This document shows, piece after piece, positions 31,361 through 63,767 of a DNA stretch of 63,767 nt. Location: assembly GCA_964035545.1 (NCBI GenBank), contig CAXIUT010000037.1, positions 1-63,767 on the forward strand, given 5' to 3'. Under the pieces are notes generated by a model. It made no database searches. It saw nothing but the letters and a program-made list of their open reading frames with translations, and had not been told where the DNA came from. The stretch comes from Bugula neritina (taxonomy: Eukaryota > Animalia > Bryozoa). Every line of letters starts with the position of its first letter. Position 1 is the stretch's first letter. The position numbers were made by a program, and so were the translations under genes.

Positions 31361-33933
31361 TCATGATTTATCTAAATATTTATCTAAATATTATTTTTTA
31401 AGCATATCTTCCAATCTTATTTCAGTCAGATTTATCCTTCTAGATTTAAGATTTAAAATATCTTCTCTTCGTTTCCTTGCTTATTTTTAATTTTATGAAA
31501 AATGTTATTCTTAACCAAGAACAACGAATTAATTCTATTCTCTATTATCAGGTAATATTTATGATTAATGTTATTACTCAACATTGATATCTTTTTGTAA
31601 TTTATTTCTTCTTTTTTAGTTCATTTATCTTTTTTCTTTTCTTTTCTTTTATATATATATAAATGCATCCCTTTCTTTAGGTTCATATTATTAAATTTCA
31701 TTATCTGATTGGTTTTTTCTACAAATATTTTTTAATTCTTAAATATTTTATGTTTTGAAGGTTGATAGCTTAGTGGAAATTTAAGATATTTAAGATTTGA
31801 AGAACTAACAAAAATTTAAGATTGTGTTCTTGTTATAGCAGTATATATCAGTCTTAACTATTCACATTATTTTCTTATTCTTTATTATTTAGAATATTGT
31901 TTTCTAATTTTATCTTATTCATTAAATGGTAAAGTGAATCTGGTCCATTAGCTTAAATCAAAATCAAGTTGCTAGTATTGAAAACTTAACCCACACAGAA
32001 AAACTTTCTAATATTGAAGTCCTTTTGAGTTATGTATTGTTTGAATTATAATTCCCTTCTATTTCTTTATTTCCTAGTCTAATTTCTTTTGTTTATTTTA
32101 TTAACTGTCCATTTAATTGCTATGAATATAACTATTTTTCTTTTCTTAATTTATTAATTTTTGAGTAATTGCATTGATTTTATTTATTTTTCTCTGTTCT
32201 CTATCAACTACTTTTTATTCTTACTAGAGAGCATCAATAAATGGAGAAACTGAAAAATATTTCAAATTTATTTTTTGCCAACGACAAGAATTAGAAAAGA
32301 CACTAAACATTTTTTAAACTGTCTCTCTAACTGAATCAGAATGAGATTAATGAAGTATTTATTCTATTTTTTTAAAGTCAATAGTAAATTATTTCCATTT
32401 TTATTCATTTATTGGCCTTTAGTTTTATTAAATTTAATCAATAGTTCTTAAGACTATTTTTTTATTTGATAGAAGATTATAAGTAAACTATCGAATATGT
32501 CTTTTATTGGCAATATCTCTAAGATTTAGAAGCAATGGTTTATCAGTTTATGTGTTAAAATGTTTATTTTTACATTTGATTTTGAAATATTTAAACCATG
32601 CTAGAAAATACAAAGCTTATGTTGATAATAAAGCTTTTTGATTCTAAAAGTAATAAGGAATTTACTCACATCCTTCTTCTTTGACTTTTCTTTAAAACTA
32701 ATATTTCAAATTTTAATAAAAACTACAATATTTTGTTTATCTTATTAAAATAGTGATATCTTCTGGTTTAATTTTCTATTTGAATACATATTTATAAATT
32801 TTATCAACTACCCAATAAACTTAACTTTCTTGATGACGAAACTATTTTACAATTACTGGATATTCTTTTTTATCAAGATTTGGTCCAGGTTTATAATCTT
32901 TGTAGAAATCTTTTCTAGATTATTTGTAGTAAGGATTAGAGATAATCAACTATTGAGCCACATCAAGCACTGATTTACTAAATCTATCTGTTTTTTTAAG
33001 ATAAGAATATTAGTATTAATGGGATATCTGTTGATAAATGATTTAATAGTTTAATACCTGACTCCTCTCCATTCATAGATGTTTTGATCAAAATCTCCTA
33101 CCAAAATTAACTTAATTTTTTTATTTATTTTCATTAATTCTTCAAGAAATTTTATTTGAGCAGGATTCGTATCTTGAAACTCATCAACAATTATCAACTC
33201 TAAAATTTATAAGTCTAAATATGAAGGTATATATTTGTTTTTTATCTATTTTGTTGCTTTTATGATTGAATAATCATATGTAGTACAATATTTATAATTA
33301 TATTGAGTTTCTAGCCATTTAAAATAATTTTAGATGACCTAGTAAATAACAGTTCCTGTAAGTTTATATTTATTTTATAATCTTTTTTTTATTTAATCTT
33401 ATTATAACCCTTCAGCTAACATTTCATGACAGATTGTGTAAACTTGTCGAATAAACTTAGTTCTCTTAATACTATATTTACCCTCATGTCTATCAATAAG
33501 AGATTCAATTTGTTTTAATTAAGTATCTTCCTCAATTACTGAAAACCTCCCAATTATTGAAAAAGCTAGTGAATGGTAACTTCTGGTTTTTTTTTCAATA
33601 AATTATTTTTTTGCATCTGAACAATCAACTTCATATATTTTTTTTATCAAATCGAACTTAGTTCTCCTATTATAGGTTAAAACTAATATATTTCTGAAAA
33701 TAGGAATATCTTGATGGAAAAAAACCTTCTTTAAAAGATTCATTATGAATCTAGTTTTTCCTGTCCCTGGAGCACCTGTTACACAATTTATTTTTGGGGG
33801 ATTAAACTTCTATTTATCTAAGTATTTATCTATTATATCTTCTCCCTCACCCAACCCAACCCCAACCCCAACCCCAACCCCAACCCCAACCCCAACCCCA
33901 ACCCCTATAAATATCAATCTAATATTTAGACAT
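31361..33933 (-). CDS. UvrD/PcrA/Rep-like superfamily 1A DNA helicase (disrupted in this assembly)
   Basis: Motifs I GAPGTGKT, Ia LTYNR, II IIVDEFQDTN, III LVGDFDQNIYEWRG, IV LKKTDRFS, V TIHNSKGLQY, VI EELRLIYTAITR. Telomere tract near codon 10; single-base frameshifts near 32991-32997 and about 31730. Confidence 0.85.
33851..33905 (+). repeat. Internal telomeric tract inside the 5' end of the helicase CDS
   Basis: CCAACCCAA(CCCCAA)n CCCC array. Confidence 0.96.
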
Positions 33934-55192: not shown

Positions 55193-55288
55193 AACCCAAC
55201 CCCAACCCCAACCCCAACCCCAACCCCAACCCCAACCCCAACCCCAACCCCAACCCCAACCCCAACCCCAACCCCAACCCCAACCCCA
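55193..55288 (+). repeat. Internal telomeric tract (intergenic)
   Basis: CCCAA(CCCCAA)n array about 94 nt upstream of the CFAP65-like start. Confidence 0.97.
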
Positions 55289-55381
55289 TCAATATCTTTA
55301 CTATTACTTCTTATAAGATGCTCTCTTTATTGCTGTTTGATAAATTAGAACATAAATTGAATCATATAAGTAAGTTATACA

Positions 55382-58300
55382 ATGTCAAAATACAAAAAGC
55401 CAGTCGAGCTATCAATTCCTGACAGTTATGAATTAGGTTTCTGTCCTGTCAATCGTCGTTCAGAGTATCCTTTCACCATTTTTAACCCTAATGCTCGTCC
55501 TCTTACATATCTCTTCAAATTCACATAATTCGCAGTCAGTCCATCCAAAGGAGTTCTTCTACCTAACACTTACAGTCAGTTTAAAATAGATTTTGCACCC
55601 AAGTAAGCTTCAGTTACAGTTGGAACAGTCATTCTTGAAGTCGAAGGCGAAGAACAGAGAATAATAAAGTTGAGTGCAGTTGGAAAATATCCCTATATTA
55701 GTACAAACATGTCATAGATTGATTTTGGAAACGTGTTGGTAACTAAGTCAGTGAGTCGAGAGTTGTTAGTTCGAAATAATTCTGAAGTACCAGCATAATT
55801 CAGAATATAAAACCAGGGAGGTGATGGGTAATACGATGAACAGTTGTTTGGATTTCATCCTGATGTAGGTATTATTCCTCCTAAAATGACATTTTCTGTA
55901 AAAGTAAGCTATACTCCTATATTTGCTGATATTAAGACAGCTGCATCGTTCAAAATAATATGTGAAAGTGGAAATTAAATACCTATTGGATTGAAAAGTT
56001 ATAGTCATAGGTTTAATGTGTCTTTCAATACTAACTCAATCAATTTTGGATAAATCAAATTGGATAATACTTGTACTAAAGTTTTAACTATTACTAATAA
56101 TTCAGAAATGAATACTTAGTTTTAATTTTTTACAGATGCAGGAAATATCTTTTTGTTCAATTAAACTAAAGGCACTCTGGCAAAAAATACATACACTAAA
56201 ATTATTATCTAATTTAGACCCAGAAACACAGTTACTTATTATGAAAGAATATATTGCTTGATAAGAAATCATCTCTTGTGCTATGTAGATCTTTTAGGAA
56301 CTTGTTATGATCTCTTGATAAGACCTTTGCCTCTTGTGCAGCAGCATGTTGATACCTTCAGAAAGAGAGTTATTGAAGGTAGAATTTCAGCTATTGAACT
56401 CAAGTATATTGAAAATAATCTGCTTCTTAAACTAGCGAAGAGAAATAGTGAAGATACTGAGGAAAATTTTTATCAAACTAATTTACAAATCAGAGAACAT
56501 CCATATGTCCTTCAGAAATAACTATTTCTTGAAGGATATAACAATCAACTTGTGTCAGTTAATCACGACCTCTTAGATTTTGGATATGCTTAGATACTGA
56601 CCATGTCTGGACAGAAATAAATAGAAGTAGTTAACAAGATGCAGTGTAAACTAAATATCACTTGGATAACTCAGAAAAGATAAAACCTGAATGGTTAATA
56701 TATGACAGTATTTCAAGTTTTTCCTGAAAATGCAGTTCTAAAACCTAATATACCAGTTAGATTTAACGTTTCATATCGACCTCTCAAAGGAAATAATTAC
56801 TATTTCCAACATTTACAATTCTTTGCCAGTAAACAGGCAAGTAAAATATCAAAAAAAACACTTTAATAATTTTAATATAGATAACTTAAGGCAAAACCTG
56901 AAAGTACTCTTCTCAGAAATGTTAAATTGAACCAGACTGTACAATCTAAAGTTAAATAAGATGTTGAATCAATAGAAGTACTACCTCCAATTAGTGGAAT
57001 TGTGAGATGTGTGGGTCATTCATTTGGTCCTAGTTCTCTGCCATTTATTCCTATTCTTAAAATACTACCTCCAAAGGTGATATTCAAACCTTGTCTTAGG
57101 GGAAATTCAGTTTATGATAGTATTGAACTGATCAATCAATCTGACACTCCTGTTTTCTTCAAAATAGGAGGAGATTCTCAGAGAGTATTCAGAGCTTATC
57201 CAAGAATGGGTTTGATATAAGCCAAGGGATTTTCTATAGTTGGACTCTAGTTTAGTCCAAAGTAGTATAAAAACTATAAATCATCAATGTCGATATCTTT
57301 AAACGATCTTCCAGGTGCGAATTCTAAGATAGTATTGAATGGAATTTGTACTTAGCCTGATTTGAAATTTGAAAATAATGGCAGAATATTTTTTGCTCCA
57401 ACTTTTACAGGAGTTTGTACTAAAAAGAAATTTATAATTGAAAATTTATCAAAAACTAAAGTAACTTATCGGATTAAAGTGCCCTAAAAATATGAAGAAT
57501 AACTAAGCTTTTAACCTAAATAAAAATAACTTTAAGCTAATGAAACTTATACCATGAATGTTTTCTTTGCTCCAAATCAAAAAAGACACTACAAAATTAA
57601 TGTTCCTGTTGAGGCTATTTAAGACTGCATCTCTCATAATTTATAATTAGGTTATCACAATCCTGGATCAGCTATTCATGAATAATCTATGGCCTAACAA
57701 AAATGTAAAGAGTTTAATTTAGAGGTGAATGGATAAGGTTCAGATGGAAGTATTCAGATATCTCATGAATAAATTGACTTTAAAACAGTTAAAATAGGCT
57801 AGCAAAAAAAAATAACTGTAAAACTTAAAAATGAATCAAGTTGTGCCTTTTTTATTGATCTTCAATTCAAAAATAACTGTTTTGATGATGGATATAAAAT
57901 ACCTACTTAAGCTCAGATCATAAATGCTTTTAACACTGATTTCAAAGAAGGAATTTTGCCTGTTAATTCTTAAATATAAGTTGGTATATTTTTCAATCCT
58001 CAAGAAGTGCAAATTTATGATTTAAAATTAATAGCAACAGCTAGATAAAAAATACCTACTCATACAGGTATCAAAGGTCGAGGATAGAGTTCACAAAAAT
58101 GTAATGTTCGAATAAAAGCTGAAGGAAACTATCCTTTAATGGAAATAATTGATATTAGAAATGATACTTTGAGTGTTGCTGCTTTATGGTAGAATTTCCA
58201 GATAGCTAAGATTAATAGTTAGATGGGATGTCAACTTGATATGAATGAAAAAAAATATTTAGCTGTAGAAACACTAACATTTACATAAGCTAAATAATTA

Positions 58301-59966
58301 GAAAATAATCTTAAACATTATGATTGGAACCTAGGATATGTTTCAACTAAAAATAAAGCTAGACCAAGAAAAGTACTAATTACAGTTAAAAATGTAGGAG
58401 GGACACCTCTTGATTATGTATTTAAATTCCCTTCAGATAATAAAGTTTAATAAGAACTATGGGCCGATCCTGGAGAACCAACTTAAGAATAAGCATATTA
58501 AAAGGCAATTCTTGAACATAATATCTTCCAAATCAAATCTAAAAGAGGAAGACTTGAAGCTGGCTAAATAAAAGATATAGAACTGATATATAGTCCTGTT
58601 CCTCTTTAAACAATGAAGTCAAGTGGTCATAGCTAAGTTCATTTCTTGCAGGTAGTTTTTCAAATAGCTGGAGGAAAATCTTTGGTATTTACTCTTAAAG
58701 GAACAACTTTGGGTCCAAATGAAGGTTTACTTACAGTTAAAAAAACTCATTATCATCTTCCAGGTACTCCAATTGGCTTAATGACTCCTTTGAGATTTCC
58801 AATTGAGATGAACAATGTTGGTTCAATCAAGGTAAACTATAAAACTGAAGTCAAGTATGAATAAGGATAATTTTAAGATGTTTTTAAAATATAAAATCCT
58901 AATTATTTCTTGCTTGCTGGTGAGAATCACTATCTTTATTGTCTTTACAAACCTTTAATAGCTAAAATTTATAATTTTACTGTGCTTTTGCATGTATTTG
59001 ACTTCAACAAGGAGATACAAGTTATCTAACTACACTTACAAGGAAGAGGATTTCCTCAAAGCAAAGCTATTAAGTAACTTTCAGATCGACCTATTCTAGG
59101 TCAGAGAAGCACTGTGAGTTAAATTGGTTCTAAGGTCTTTTTCTCTATTGAAGATATTGACTTCCAGGATATGTGCCCTGAGTAAACCAAATATCGACTT
59201 GTCATTCTTTATAATATGTCTAAAGAACATTCTCTAACTTTTGACTTCCCAACTCAATCTTCAATGGCTGCAAACAAGCAAGGTCTGACCTGTGGAGATA
59301 AATTTCTTATTTAACCTTTCCAAGGTAATCTTTAACCTGGTAAATTTGTTGAGTTAAAGATCACCTTATCAGCTGGCATATCTCCAAGTTTCTATGAAGG
59401 ATAAATTCCTTGCCATATTACTTGGTCGAGCAATAAGTACTCGATTGAGGATAATGATCGAACACAAAAGGATGTATTGATGGTTGCCCAAAAGTAATCA
59501 TTATTTTTGAGGATCAGAAAGGCTCCAAATTTAGCCGTAATATGAATTTTATTTAGGTAAAGAAAAGTCTGAGTACTATGCCTGTATTATCTGACCCAAA
59601 AAAATCTTTATTCGACCATATTTTCTAAAGTATATTTAGCAGTGCTCTTAATGATTAATAGATCAATGATTACGTAAAAAAGTTATAGAATGAATAATGT
59701 CCAATAGCTGACATGATGAATGATGAGTTGCCGATTGGAATAGGATCATAAGTATTTTTCAATTTATATAGGCTGAAAATAGATAGGTTGTTGAGGTGAA
59801 GAGAGATTATTCTAACTTTTAGTGGATGATGTTAAACGATTAGTTTTTGGATATTACTGAAATAGTGATGTAAAATACCTTTTTCAATATTATTCAGGAA
59901 ACAACTCATCAAGAAAATGATTTCCTTCGGGTGGGAAAGAAGTTCATTCAGGCAAACAAATTATGA
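55382..59966 (+). CDS. CFAP65: CFAP65/CCDC108-like cilia central-pair protein (ASH/MSP Ig-like repeats)
   Basis: LGFCPV, SAVGKYPYI, YYERIYCLIRNH...VDLLGTC, EQELWADPGEP; 20-nt introns 59537-59556 and 59752-59771; 1515 codons. Confidence 0.85.
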
Positions 59967-60005
59967 TATATAAGATTTTATAATCTATATTTATAGTCAT
60001 CAATC

Positions 60006-60590
60006 ATGCCGCCTAAAAAGAAAGTATAAGCTCCTCCTCCACCTCAGCCACCTCCTCCAGAAAAAGTAGCTAACACTATCCTTAAAATAATTACATCTGA
60101 AGGAAAAGAGTTCAAAGTAAGTTAGTAGTTATTTACTAAATATTCTCAAAAAGGAAAAGATCTTGTTTAGCATGCGAAAGACAACATTATTAAGTTAGAG
60201 GAAATCGATGGGCAAAGCTTTTAAATAGTAGTAAATTACTTTTAGATGCATAAAGAAAAATAACCAATGAAAATAGTAGTGCCTATCCGAAGTAATCAGA
60301 GTTTAAAACATATAATGTAAGAAAATGATGCTTAGCTAGTTTAAAAAATTAGTAGTAATGGTGATCATGCCATATTGAAAATGATGGATACCTGTCTAAC
60401 TTTATAAATATAGTCTTTGAGGAAAAGATTGGCATGTGCTGTGGCTTTGAAGTTGATGAGATCAACTATTGAAGATCTGAAAGAAGAGTATAATTTGGGA
60501 TAATATGGTTTTGATGAGGAAAGTATGCGCAATTCAATGAAACCTTTGATATAAGAGTTGAGAAAAAATAATATGGAAGAATAGATATGA
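60006..60590 (+). CDS. Divergent SKP1-family protein with Pro-rich N-terminus
   Basis: LKIITSEGKEFKV, IDGQSFEIVVNYFEMH, LEIESLRKRLACAVA...EDLKEEYNL. Confidence 0.82.
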
Positions 60591-61204
60591 TCAGTTTATT
60601 TCTTAAAATTATGTTTATTGGGATTGGACCTAAGGAGTAACTCCATTTACAGAACTAGAGTCTCCAGGCGTTCCGGTATTAACGTTCCATCCCAAATAGT
60701 AATTTAGTCCGAAAAGAACAGCCCAAATTATTGCTAAAATTGCCAATACCCAAGCGAGACATTTTTCCATTTTTTTAATACCACCCAAGCCTATTTCTTC
60801 ATCTGAATAAATCAGAAGAAGAGATTGATTTTTACCAAGTTTATTGTAAACTTCTTGGATCGTGGGACCAGGTTTTAGTCGAACATACTTTGTTTTTTAT
60901 TTGACTTAGTGTAAACAAAAGAAGACAAGTCCTTTTGTTTGTATTTGTTCATAAAGCCTAAACATAGCCTGTTCTATTTTAAGTTATCTTTTGAATAGCA
61001 TGCTAAATATAGAAGACAATACAACGGGTTTGTTGGTTCTTTTAAAGATTTTGATGCTTCTTTATGTTTTGCAAAGTAAACAGGAATACAGTCAGGATGT
61101 TTTTGTTTTAAAAAACGCATGTGTTGTCTTTAATTCTCGATATTTTGTCTTTAATTTTATTCATTTAGTTTTTATGTTTATTATTTATTTGTTTCTTTCT
61201 CCAT
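60591..61204 (-). CDS. ATG8-like ubiquitin-fold protein with C-terminal transmembrane extension
   Basis: KQKHPDCIPVY, MLFKRELKIEQ, LVFF, TIQEVY, LLLIYSDEEIGLGG, then a TM segment; 20-nt intron 61003-61022; 197 aa. Confidence 0.75.
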
Positions 61205-61262
61205 CAATTATTTTTTGATTTATATATATTTAAATTAAATGAGGAATTTGATAATATTACTA

Positions 61263-62905
61263 TCAATCATTCTTTGGATTTTTATCATTATGACTTTTAG
61301 CTAAAATTGAACGATTAAGTGAAGATTCTACTCTTCTGCTTTTTCCTCTGACAAAAACATCTTTTTTCCTGAGTTCTAATCCTAAACTTACAATATATTC
61401 TCGATTTTATCCTCCAATCTTTCTACTTTAAATGATTCCCATCAAAGCTATTGGTTTTTCATGAGTAGCAATATCAAAACTATGTTTTTTACACTTAGGT
61501 ATACTTCTTGAGCTGCCAATTTCCATAAGATAATCTTTGGATGTAACTATTTTGATGAATTCAATTCCTTTGCCACAAAATAAGTCCATTGATGTGATAT
61601 ATTCGTATTATCCGAAGGTATGATCGACAGTTTGAATATTAGAAAATTGAGTAGGAATTGAAAATGTTTAAATAGTCTTTGTTTATTGTTTTAATTCTTT
61701 TATTATTTCATTCTCATATATTTCATAGTCAGTAGTCATCGAAAGGACATGTTAATCACTATAAGTAAATACTAATCTTTTAATTTTATAGTTTTTTTCA
61801 ACCGGTAATTTAGCACTATCATCGAATTATCGATATATTCCTTGTCCTCTACTCAGTCCACGGAATTACTTTCTGGTTTAAAAAAGACTTCCAGAAGAAT
61901 GCATCACTTCTTAAGCATATCTAGCTGTTTTTATAGGTTAAAGAGTGTTGAAATTTTTCCTTTATTTTTATTTAAGTCTGAAAAGCATAATATTACCTTC
62001 TTTTTCTTTTCTAGTTATTATTTATTTTGTTTATGCTAGTTCTCTCTAAGTAGTTTTTAATTTAAAGCTAAGATTGTCTATTTAGTGCTTATTACTTTTA
62101 TCATTCATTTTTTTAGCAGTTTATAAACTTTTAAACTTCTATTTTAGTTTTTATAGTTATTAGTTGATTACTGAATCATTATTATTTTTTTCTTTTGACT
62201 TTTCAAGAGGTTTAGTAGATATTTTATTTTCAAGACTAAGGATGTGTTCTCTTAAAGACTTGATATTTTTTTCTAGTTAATCTTATTTCTTTTTTTGTTC
62301 TTGTATTTTCTTTTTCATATGAACTATTTCTTAATTTTGCTGCATTATTTTTTGCGTGAGCTATTCTTCTTTTTTATAGCTATCTGCATTTTTTTATTGT
62401 TTATCTAGTTTTTAAAAAAGTTTGATTTGAGCTTTAAGATCTTCATTTATTCTTTCTTTTTCTTTGATTTCATTTTTAAAACCGTCAATTTTATCCCCAT
62501 CAAGATATTTATATTTATATCTAAGTTGTTCAATCTCTTTTCTTAGAATACCATTTTTCTTTATTTCATTTTATAACTATTTTTTAGTTAAATCAACTCG
62601 ATTATCAGCTCCTTTATGCTATTCTTATTTTGGTTTATGTTGCACTTTTTTGAGAACTGAGTTAAGCTGCTCATTTAGCTGCTTAAAATCACTTTTAAGA
62701 GTTTAATTTTGCTTTTTCTGGCGCTGTATAAGTTTCAACCTTATTAAATCATCTGGTACATTTCAGAGATTCGATTCTGGTATTTTTTAATAATTCGACG
62801 CGTGCCTTCTTTCGATTCCATCTCAGACTCTACAACCACAATCTAGGAGCGTAGTGATTCGTAAGATGCCTGAATCTCCTTATCATTTGTATTTCCTTCT
62901 TACAT
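61263..62905 (-). CDS. Coiled-coil protein with C-terminal jacalin-like beta-prism domain
   Basis: Long K/E coiled coil, then FDD...EYITSM...IEFIKIVTSK...IALMG...IVSLGL; 20-nt intron 62740-62759. Confidence 0.65.
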
Positions 62906-63126
62906 CAATATAAATAATAAAACATATCAAATCATAACTCATTAAAAATAGAGAAAAAATGACACTATTAAAAATCATGGGCAAAAAGAGAAAAAAGAAT
63001 AATATCGATCATAACCTCTCTTTAGATATCAGAATATCTAAATAAATAAATTATTGAAATAGCTTAATTAATATAATCTATATTATATGGTATTCTTTAT
63101 TTTGATTCAAACTATTGATTCATAAA

Positions 63127-63702
63127 TCATCTTAACATATGTTAGTTGACCTCTTTTTGGTCCAAGATGGAGTTTTAGAATTCTTTATAAGATTAAAGCT
63201 AATCTGTTTGCTCATGAAAGGCTATCATAAGCTACCTGATTGATTCTGAATGCATGAAATATTTTGATTCTACAAGTAAATCGGCATTCCACATTAACTT
63301 TCTTATATCATCCATCTACTCAGGGAATTGTATTAGATAAAATATCATCATTTCAAGGAAAAAATTCATAGCATATTGATTGCTGAAGTAAACTTCAATT
63401 ATTTCTTTCTTTTTACTTGCAGATAACTAGGTTTTTCCAAACCATCTAAGAAATCTTGAATTTGCTCCTATTGAGTTTGTTTAGATAAAGCAGAAGAAAG
63501 TTGAAGCTTTCTGAAGAATATTTTTGTAGAGATTGAGGATAAAACTAAATTTTATATTCTCAGCTATTTCTGCCTCAAGGAAGCTATCAACAGTGATTTT
63601 AAAGATATTTGCAAGTTAACAGTGTTCAGTATTCTTATAGATTATACTAAGAAGGTTTTCAAAGATTATTTCATAATCTTCACTTAATAGCATATGGAAA
63701 CA
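63127..63702 (-). CDS. Hypothetical protein, probably 5'-truncated by the right telomere
   Basis: Frame is open from the telomere junction (first ATG at 63693) to TGA at 63127. Confidence 0.6.
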
Positions 63703-63767
63703 TTGGGGTTGGGGTTGGGGTTGGGGTTGGGGTTGGGGTTGGGGTTGGGGTTGGGGTTGGGGTTGGG
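63703..63767 (+). repeat. Right telomere (TTGGGG)n
   Basis: Perfect T2G4 array to the window end. Confidence 0.98.

Follow-up and report, generated by a model that had tools for sequence, protein, structure and literature searches.

How does a protein with the look of ATG8 come to carry a membrane anchor of its own, and to which organism does its gene belong? The question is raised by a two-exon gene on the minus strand of the 63,767-nucleotide stretch of DNA analysed here (the window), which gives a product of 197 amino acids from 197 codons. Exon 1 (61023..61204) contributes 182 nt, comprising codons 1-60 and 2 nt of codon 61, and begins with an ATG at 61204-61202. It is followed by a 20-nt GT..AG intron in phase 2 (61003..61022) and by exon 2 (60591..61002), which closes with a TGA stop at 60593-60591. 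The start codon is backed by the N-termini of orthologs, which are of similar length. The preliminary description of this DNA had proposed that, once a 20-nt intron is removed, an ATG8-like protein and a transmembrane segment follow one another in a single frame, and the gene does read in this way.

The product would fall into four parts, all encoded on the minus strand. A charged, mostly acidic N-terminal extension (residues 1-28; 61121..61204) precedes an ATG8-like domain of the ubiquitin fold (residues 29-131; 60792..61120, interrupted by the intron), which we delimit from a family profile and from an AlphaFold2 model of a relative. A linker of ten residues, G132-K141 (60762..60791), begins with the Gly motif G-L-G-G and continues as a basic juxtamembrane stretch. 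The last part is a transmembrane helix predicted from Kyte-Doolittle hydropathy (residues 142-166, with its hydrophobic core at 142-160; 60687..60761), together with a short, polar and acidic C-terminal tail (residues 167-197; 60594..60686) whose last eight residues form an acidic-aromatic motif (60617-60594). A large part of the N-terminal extension is encoded at 61124-61186 by a tandem repeat whose unit measures 21 nt, or seven codons (TRF: period 21, 3 copies, 77% matches). The repeat-encoded sequence is charged and heptad-like, and its length differs between species.

The coding sequence holds 12 in-frame TAA/TAG codons, 11 of them TAA and one TAG. Where ten orthologous exon-2 models align well, such codons stand opposite Glu 33 times, opposite Asp 16 times and opposite Gln once. 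Judged from these alignments, TAA and TAG are Glu codons in the source ciliate, which is the peritrich code (table 30). A standard list of open reading frames has only fragments of 48 and 52 amino acids at this gene, in keeping with the earlier remark that it is invisible in the standard track.

The setting of the gene is equally informative as to its origin. The window is a chain of several small, telomere-capped minichromosomes laid end to end, with C4A2 telomeric repeats at the starts of the pieces (1-82, 2118-2210, 33850-33905 and 55195-55288) and a G4T2 telomeric repeat at the end of the last (63703-63767). The ATG8-like gene lies on this last minichromosome, which is complete at about 8.6 kb (55195-63767). 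The 216-Mb assembly as a whole is a mix of two organisms. Its megabase contigs (C2-C5 of G000) carry standard-code genes with long introns, among them an LC3-like ATG8, an ATG12 ending in G, an ATG4 and an ATG7, and its small telomere-bearing contigs (C46, C96, C101, C126 and C188) carry genes full of in-frame TAA and TAG. The separation of these two types of gene on two classes of contig implies that the ciliate is a passenger in another organism's assembly. We conclude that a ciliate with the peritrich code is the source of the gene, and that its minichromosomes lie inside the assembly of the other organism.

An intronless gene of 194 codons (60006-60590, plus strand) converges on the ATG8-like gene. 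Its stop codon (TGA, 60588-60590) immediately adjoins the minus-strand TGA that closes the ATG8-like gene, the two together forming the palindrome TGATCA at 60588-60593, and with the stops abutting in this way the two messages must overlap. The same convergent neighbour, again with abutting stops, is present in seven of ten loci (the window, L003, L007, L008, L009, L011 and L013). By eye its product looks Skp1/BTB-like; a Pfam scan of its L003 ortholog gave no match.

Relatives of the ATG8-like gene were sought with the stop-free pieces of the window and with an alignment of them. About 45 related fragments were recovered from metagenomes, SRA assemblies and one EukProt transcriptome, and every fragment that reaches far enough keeps the helix. 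Ten gene models were rebuilt from the relatives' contigs; these range in G+C from 30% to 55% and represent different organisms. In all ten, the same codon is interrupted by a phase-2 intron of 20-22 nt, a single frame runs through the helix to a TGA stop, and there is a hydrophobic 19-mer with a Kyte-Doolittle value of 1.8-2.7. The transcript-derived relative P0025 shows the spliced junction. It ends, as do P0020 and P0030, exactly before a conserved juxtamembrane Glu, which is the result expected if that Glu is specified by TAA or TAG in those species. In P0034/P0042 both the fold and the helix are contained in one uninterrupted open reading frame of 158 amino acids. For the eight closest models the mean pairwise identity is 0.67 in the ATG8-like fold, 0.62 in the linker, 0.51 in the helix and 0.18 in the tail, the last value falling to 14% over all ten. 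The family also has a conserved Cys, which belongs to an H-P-D-C motif. When P0025 was searched with phmmer against 1.8 billion proteins, the 16 matches were all fragments of this family, with no canonical ATG8 among them; the ten that were looked up came from ENA, Logan, JGI or EukProt, one of them having an NCBI source as well. A word search with P0025 returned only P0025 itself.

A second genomic copy, at G000 C46:69385-69998, is 98% identical, and these two near-identical copies are the only members of the family in the source ciliate genome. They are separated by seven synonymous and three non-synonymous differences (10 of 594 coding bases). Two of the latter, T5A and K7Q, fall within the N-terminal extension, and codons 132-197 show no difference of either kind. 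The intron differs at 4 of its 20 bases. The excess of synonymous changes, together with the diverged intron, is what purifying selection on a coding gene should produce. The ATG8-like gene is thus real and conserved, and it is hidden by the variant code and by the 20-nt intron.

Is the N-terminal domain truly an ATG8? The preliminary description had matched it by eye to ATG8 motifs and had looked to the Pfam model PF02991 for support, which was not forthcoming. An hmmscan of three stop-free window pieces and six relatives found no match to PF02991 at E values up to 10 and nothing else of relevance, and a six-frame scan of the whole genome with the same model misses the gene while finding the canonical ciliate ATG8 on C188. 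The single sequence P0025 gave only chance matches when run with phmmer against the PDB. The likeness emerges when the family is considered as a whole. A profile built from a 16-row alignment (A3) and compared with the PDB sequences gave 55 matches, 50 of which belong to the ATG8 family; four unrelated chains appear near the bottom, at E values of 0.21 and weaker. The best match is LGG-1 (E 3.8e-5), with profile positions 3-101 aligned on ATG8 residues 22-117.

For the structural comparisons, the natural relatives P0025 and P0034 stood in for the window protein, whose pieces were searched separately. AlphaFold2 modelling of P0025 with A3 gave a pLDDT of 86.5 and a pTM of 0.77. The top 50 Foldseek matches of this model in the PDB are all GABARAP, LC3 or Atg8 structures (probability 1.0, TM 0.70-0.72). 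The same proteins are the top matches in VIA-align, with a Z-score of 13.4 and an rmsd of 1.2-1.6 Å over 93-96 residues, and with model residues 1-113 placed on ATG8 residues 18-117. The ESM Atlas, searched by shape, likewise returns an ATG8 cluster as its best match. The ATG8 likeness that had been proposed by eye is therefore borne out by profile and by structure, and the modelling check that had been suggested, here run on P0025, leads only to structures of the ATG8 family.

Results for other relatives are more limited. The full-length AlphaFold2 model of P0034 is weak (pLDDT 61.6) and serves for secondary structure only, with a low-confidence helix at residues 9-22 before strand 1 and a long C-terminal helix. 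Its ESM Atlas features find ATG8 clusters at 0.87, which is a lead only; those of P0008 find nothing. ATG12 (PF04110) was considered as closer kin and set aside. When A3 was aligned by hhalign with exons of the other organism's genes, ATG8 gave 66% over 58 columns and ATG12 the weaker 22% over 26 columns, and there is no ATG12 among the top PDB matches. On these models and profiles, the N-terminal part has the ATG8 fold but has diverged to about 20% identity with known ATG8s, and it lies outside the PF02991 model.

The divergence may extend to the LIR/AIM docking site, which in ATG8 proteins comprises two hydrophobic pockets and basic clamp residues. In the alignment of A3 with the PDB sequences, the β2 strand and several hydrophobic positions align, and GABARAP K46, K48 and R67 stand opposite non-basic residues or a gap. 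We take these three to be the basic residues that clamp LIR peptides. Since these positions are not kept, canonical LIR binding by the domain appears doubtful.

At the end of the domain, the motif G-L-G-G (residues 132-135) straddles Gly116 of ATG8, sequence and structural alignments placing its glycines at ATG8 positions 115 and 117. The strict di-glycine of the earlier reading does not hold across the family, in which the linker follows the pattern G-[LM]-x-G and then [IL]-K-K-[ML]-E-K; P0040 and P0033 are without the second Gly, and P0034 is without the motif. After the Gly position there are a further 62 residues, which include the membrane helix. The segment at residues 142-160 has a mean Kyte-Doolittle value of 2.69, and the claim that a transmembrane helix directly follows the Gly-containing end of the domain is upheld by prediction in the window, with a comparable hydrophobic segment in each of the ten models.

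The arrangement around the helix suggests how the protein would sit in a membrane. The N-terminus is strongly charged, there is no signal peptide, and the single hydrophobic segment lies at residues 142-166 of 197, all features looked for in a tail-anchored protein. Across the ten models there are about three Lys and Arg residues before the helix and none after it. By the positive-inside rule, this distribution would leave the ATG8-like domain facing the cytosol, and the extreme C-terminus is presumably luminal. The tails themselves vary from 11 to 37 amino acids across the family, with a net charge of -1 to -7, and are unconserved apart from a terminal motif, E-W/F-x-E-[DE]-I-[NT], which is found in seven of the ten models (L003, L007, L008, L009, L013, L014 and L031). 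In the window protein this motif takes the form E-F-E-E-I-N.

The same ciliate possesses canonical autophagy genes. On C188 (L018 1424-1740; G000 C188:66040-66362) it encodes a canonical ATG8, in which two residues follow the terminal F-G, and there are two ATG4 genes (G000 C101:9173-10018 and C96:11754-12440), implying that the membrane-anchored protein is an addition to the conventional system and not a replacement for it. The canonical ciliate ATG8 shifts frame between its two coding parts, where no GT..AG intron was found; unusual splicing might account for this, as might an indel in the assembly, or the locus may be a pseudogene. On C126 the ciliate has another gene with weak likeness to ATG8, which ends without Gly. 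A search with ATG7_N matched only a megabase contig of the other organism and says nothing firm about the ciliate.

What, then, does the protein do? The reading we favour, with a probability of roughly 0.6, is that of a constitutive, tail-anchor-like and cytosol-facing ATG8 module that has no need of ATG4, ATG7 or ATG3. The ATG8-like domain would be held about ten residues from the bilayer, copying the geometry of lipidated ATG8 without the action of these enzymes. Such a module would permanently mark one endomembrane, most likely the ER by analogy with TtATG8D, a transmembrane ATG8 of Tetrahymena, and partners could be recruited there by β-strand docking. The conservation of the linker and helix, which approaches that of the fold, the missing aromatic residue before the Gly, and the existence of a member without the Gly all argue for a constitutive anchor.

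The preliminary description had left the choice between a membrane-integral protein and a tethered precursor. In the latter case, ATG4 would cut after Gly132 and release a soluble ATG8-like protein, which would then be lipidated or remain free, the helix serving only to hold or target it. A suitable Gly is present in all members except P0034. In the alignments it is no more than one position away from ATG8 G116, and with an aliphatic residue before it and Leu or Met after it, it resembles the Y-G-L of GABARAP; the ciliate has two genes for peptidases of the ATG4 type. ATG4 normally needs an aromatic residue before the scissile Gly, however, and none is found there in this family. Nor would a discarded propeptide be expected to show identities of 0.62 in the linker and 0.51 in the helix against 0.67 in the fold, and the absence of this Gly from P0034 and of the second Gly from P0040 and P0033 also speaks against cleavage, as does the finding that N-terminally tagged TtATG8D stays at the ER (PMC12153319). 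The evidence leans towards the membrane-integral form and makes the precursor rather improbable. A gene-model artefact, in which fold and helix are encoded by separate messages or the helix is spliced out with another intron, we consider very improbable. Exon 2 does contain two intron-like GTA..YAG stretches, one of 16 nt (60749-60734) and one of 21 nt (60650-60630), and no others. None of the ten real introns is as short as the first, however, and its removal would cause a frameshift inside the conserved helix; the second falls within the variable tail, and its removal would spare the helix. The conservation of the amino-acid sequence across ten organisms, in a single frame that extends from the fold to the stop, and the precise ending of P0025, P0020 and P0030 at the expected TAA/TAG Glu codon of the juxtamembrane stretch, are likewise at odds with an artefact. 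As an observation apart, the 21-nt GTA..TAG stretch at 60630-60650 is in frame and could be an optional intron that drops seven residues.

A further alternative accepts the shape of the domain and the anchor and dispenses with an autophagy-type function, the protein being a generic scaffold of ubiquitin-like domain and transmembrane segment such as Herp and TMUB1, which act in ER quality control. This would suit the position of the family outside PF02991, its identity of only about 20% to ATG8s, the failure to keep the basic LIR-clamping positions and the indifference of TtATG8D to starvation (PMC12153319). It accords poorly with the structural and profile matches, the top ones of which are all to ATG8 and not to ubiquitin and include the ATG8-typical helix before strand 1, and with the presence of the β2 edge strand. 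HERPUD1 and TMUB1 do have a domain of the ubiquitin fold that faces the cytosol and is anchored in the ER membrane, but their domain is of the ubiquitin type and not the ATG8 type, and their architecture and topology differ from those seen here; a sequence relation to either was not seen in any search run. We regard this alternative as unlikely, if less so than cleavage by ATG4, and retain the constitutively anchored ATG8 module as the preferred reading.

How does such a module compare with the known ways of bringing ATG8 to a membrane? Canonical ATG8, LC3 and GABARAP have the same fold as the peritrich domain, and their motifs come in the same order, beginning with the K-x-P-D-x-I-P strand and finishing with Y-S-D-E. 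Normally they become attached to membranes only by a lipid link, which is reversible and is formed by enzymes of a dedicated cascade. They possess a free or short-tailed C-terminal Gly, which the peritrich protein lacks, and a basic LIR clamp, whose positions it does not keep. The ATG8 of the apicomplexans Plasmodium and Toxoplasma, which are also alveolates, needs no ATG4 priming and is present constitutively on a non-autophagosomal membrane. It would resemble the peritrich protein in dispensing with priming and in its constitutive membrane location, but it is still lipid-conjugated through its terminal Gly and has no transmembrane helix. In yeast, two papers on the Hfl1-Atg8 pair describe a lipidation-independent Atg8 on the vacuole membrane (PMC6279349, PMC8176713). 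In this pair a transmembrane protein keeps the ATG8 module on the membrane with no conjugation to phosphatidylethanolamine, much as we propose for the peritrich protein. The yeast arrangement, however, consists of two proteins bound non-covalently, whereas in the peritrichs module and anchor would form one polypeptide.

The closest parallel is again from a ciliate. Matsuda et al. (mBio 2025, PMC12153319) describe five T. thermophila ATG8 homologs, and they state of one of these, TtATG8D or ATG8-66 (TTHERM_00526360), citing Zhang et al. (2022, Autophagy 18:2969), that a predicted transmembrane domain replaces the C-terminal Gly. The protein was proposed to be constitutively membrane-bound, and it coexists with canonical ATG8s. 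N-terminally tagged EGFP-TtATG8D was located at the ER and was unchanged on starvation (PMC12153319). The novelty implied in the preliminary description was therefore overstated, since the transmembrane ATG8 is already published as a kind, in Tetrahymena, and the peritrich family adds to that kind. The abstract of the 2022 paper reportedly makes the same statement about Tetrahymena, whereas a transmembrane ATG8 is not mentioned in a survey of autophagy genes in ciliates from 2017. If a whole family escapes both the standard family models and gene callers that use the standard code, as it does here, surveys of autophagy genes in ciliates may be expected to undercount divergent ATG8-like proteins.

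Compared by the published description, TtATG8D and the peritrich family are both ciliate proteins in which an ATG8-like domain is followed by a predicted transmembrane helix in place of a free C-terminal Gly. They differ in that ordinary searches sufficed to identify TtATG8D as a homolog of ATG8, whereas PF02991 misses the peritrich family, and in that the peritrich family keeps a G-x-x-G motif before the helix. The peritrich family might even not be orthologous to TtATG8D and instead be a lineage of its own, older and further diverged, of ATG8-like proteins with a gene-encoded anchor, an idea that we hold tentatively and with the odds against it. If it were true, ciliates would have exchanged a lipid anchor for a protein one either repeatedly or on a single, very early occasion, and the juxtamembrane stretch, the helix and the acidic-aromatic luminal end might have a function of their own, for example in transmembrane signalling or organelle tethering.

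The Tetrahymena case has so far been that of a single gene mentioned in passing, without an assigned function. What is new here is a conserved family across organisms with the peritrich code, in which the intron keeps its place, linker and helix are conserved, and one motif recurs at the C-terminus; these features provide comparative constraints for the design of experiments in Tetrahymena. A permanently membrane-wired ATG8 would show what the ATG8 fold can do without the conjugation cascade on which its canonical relatives depend.
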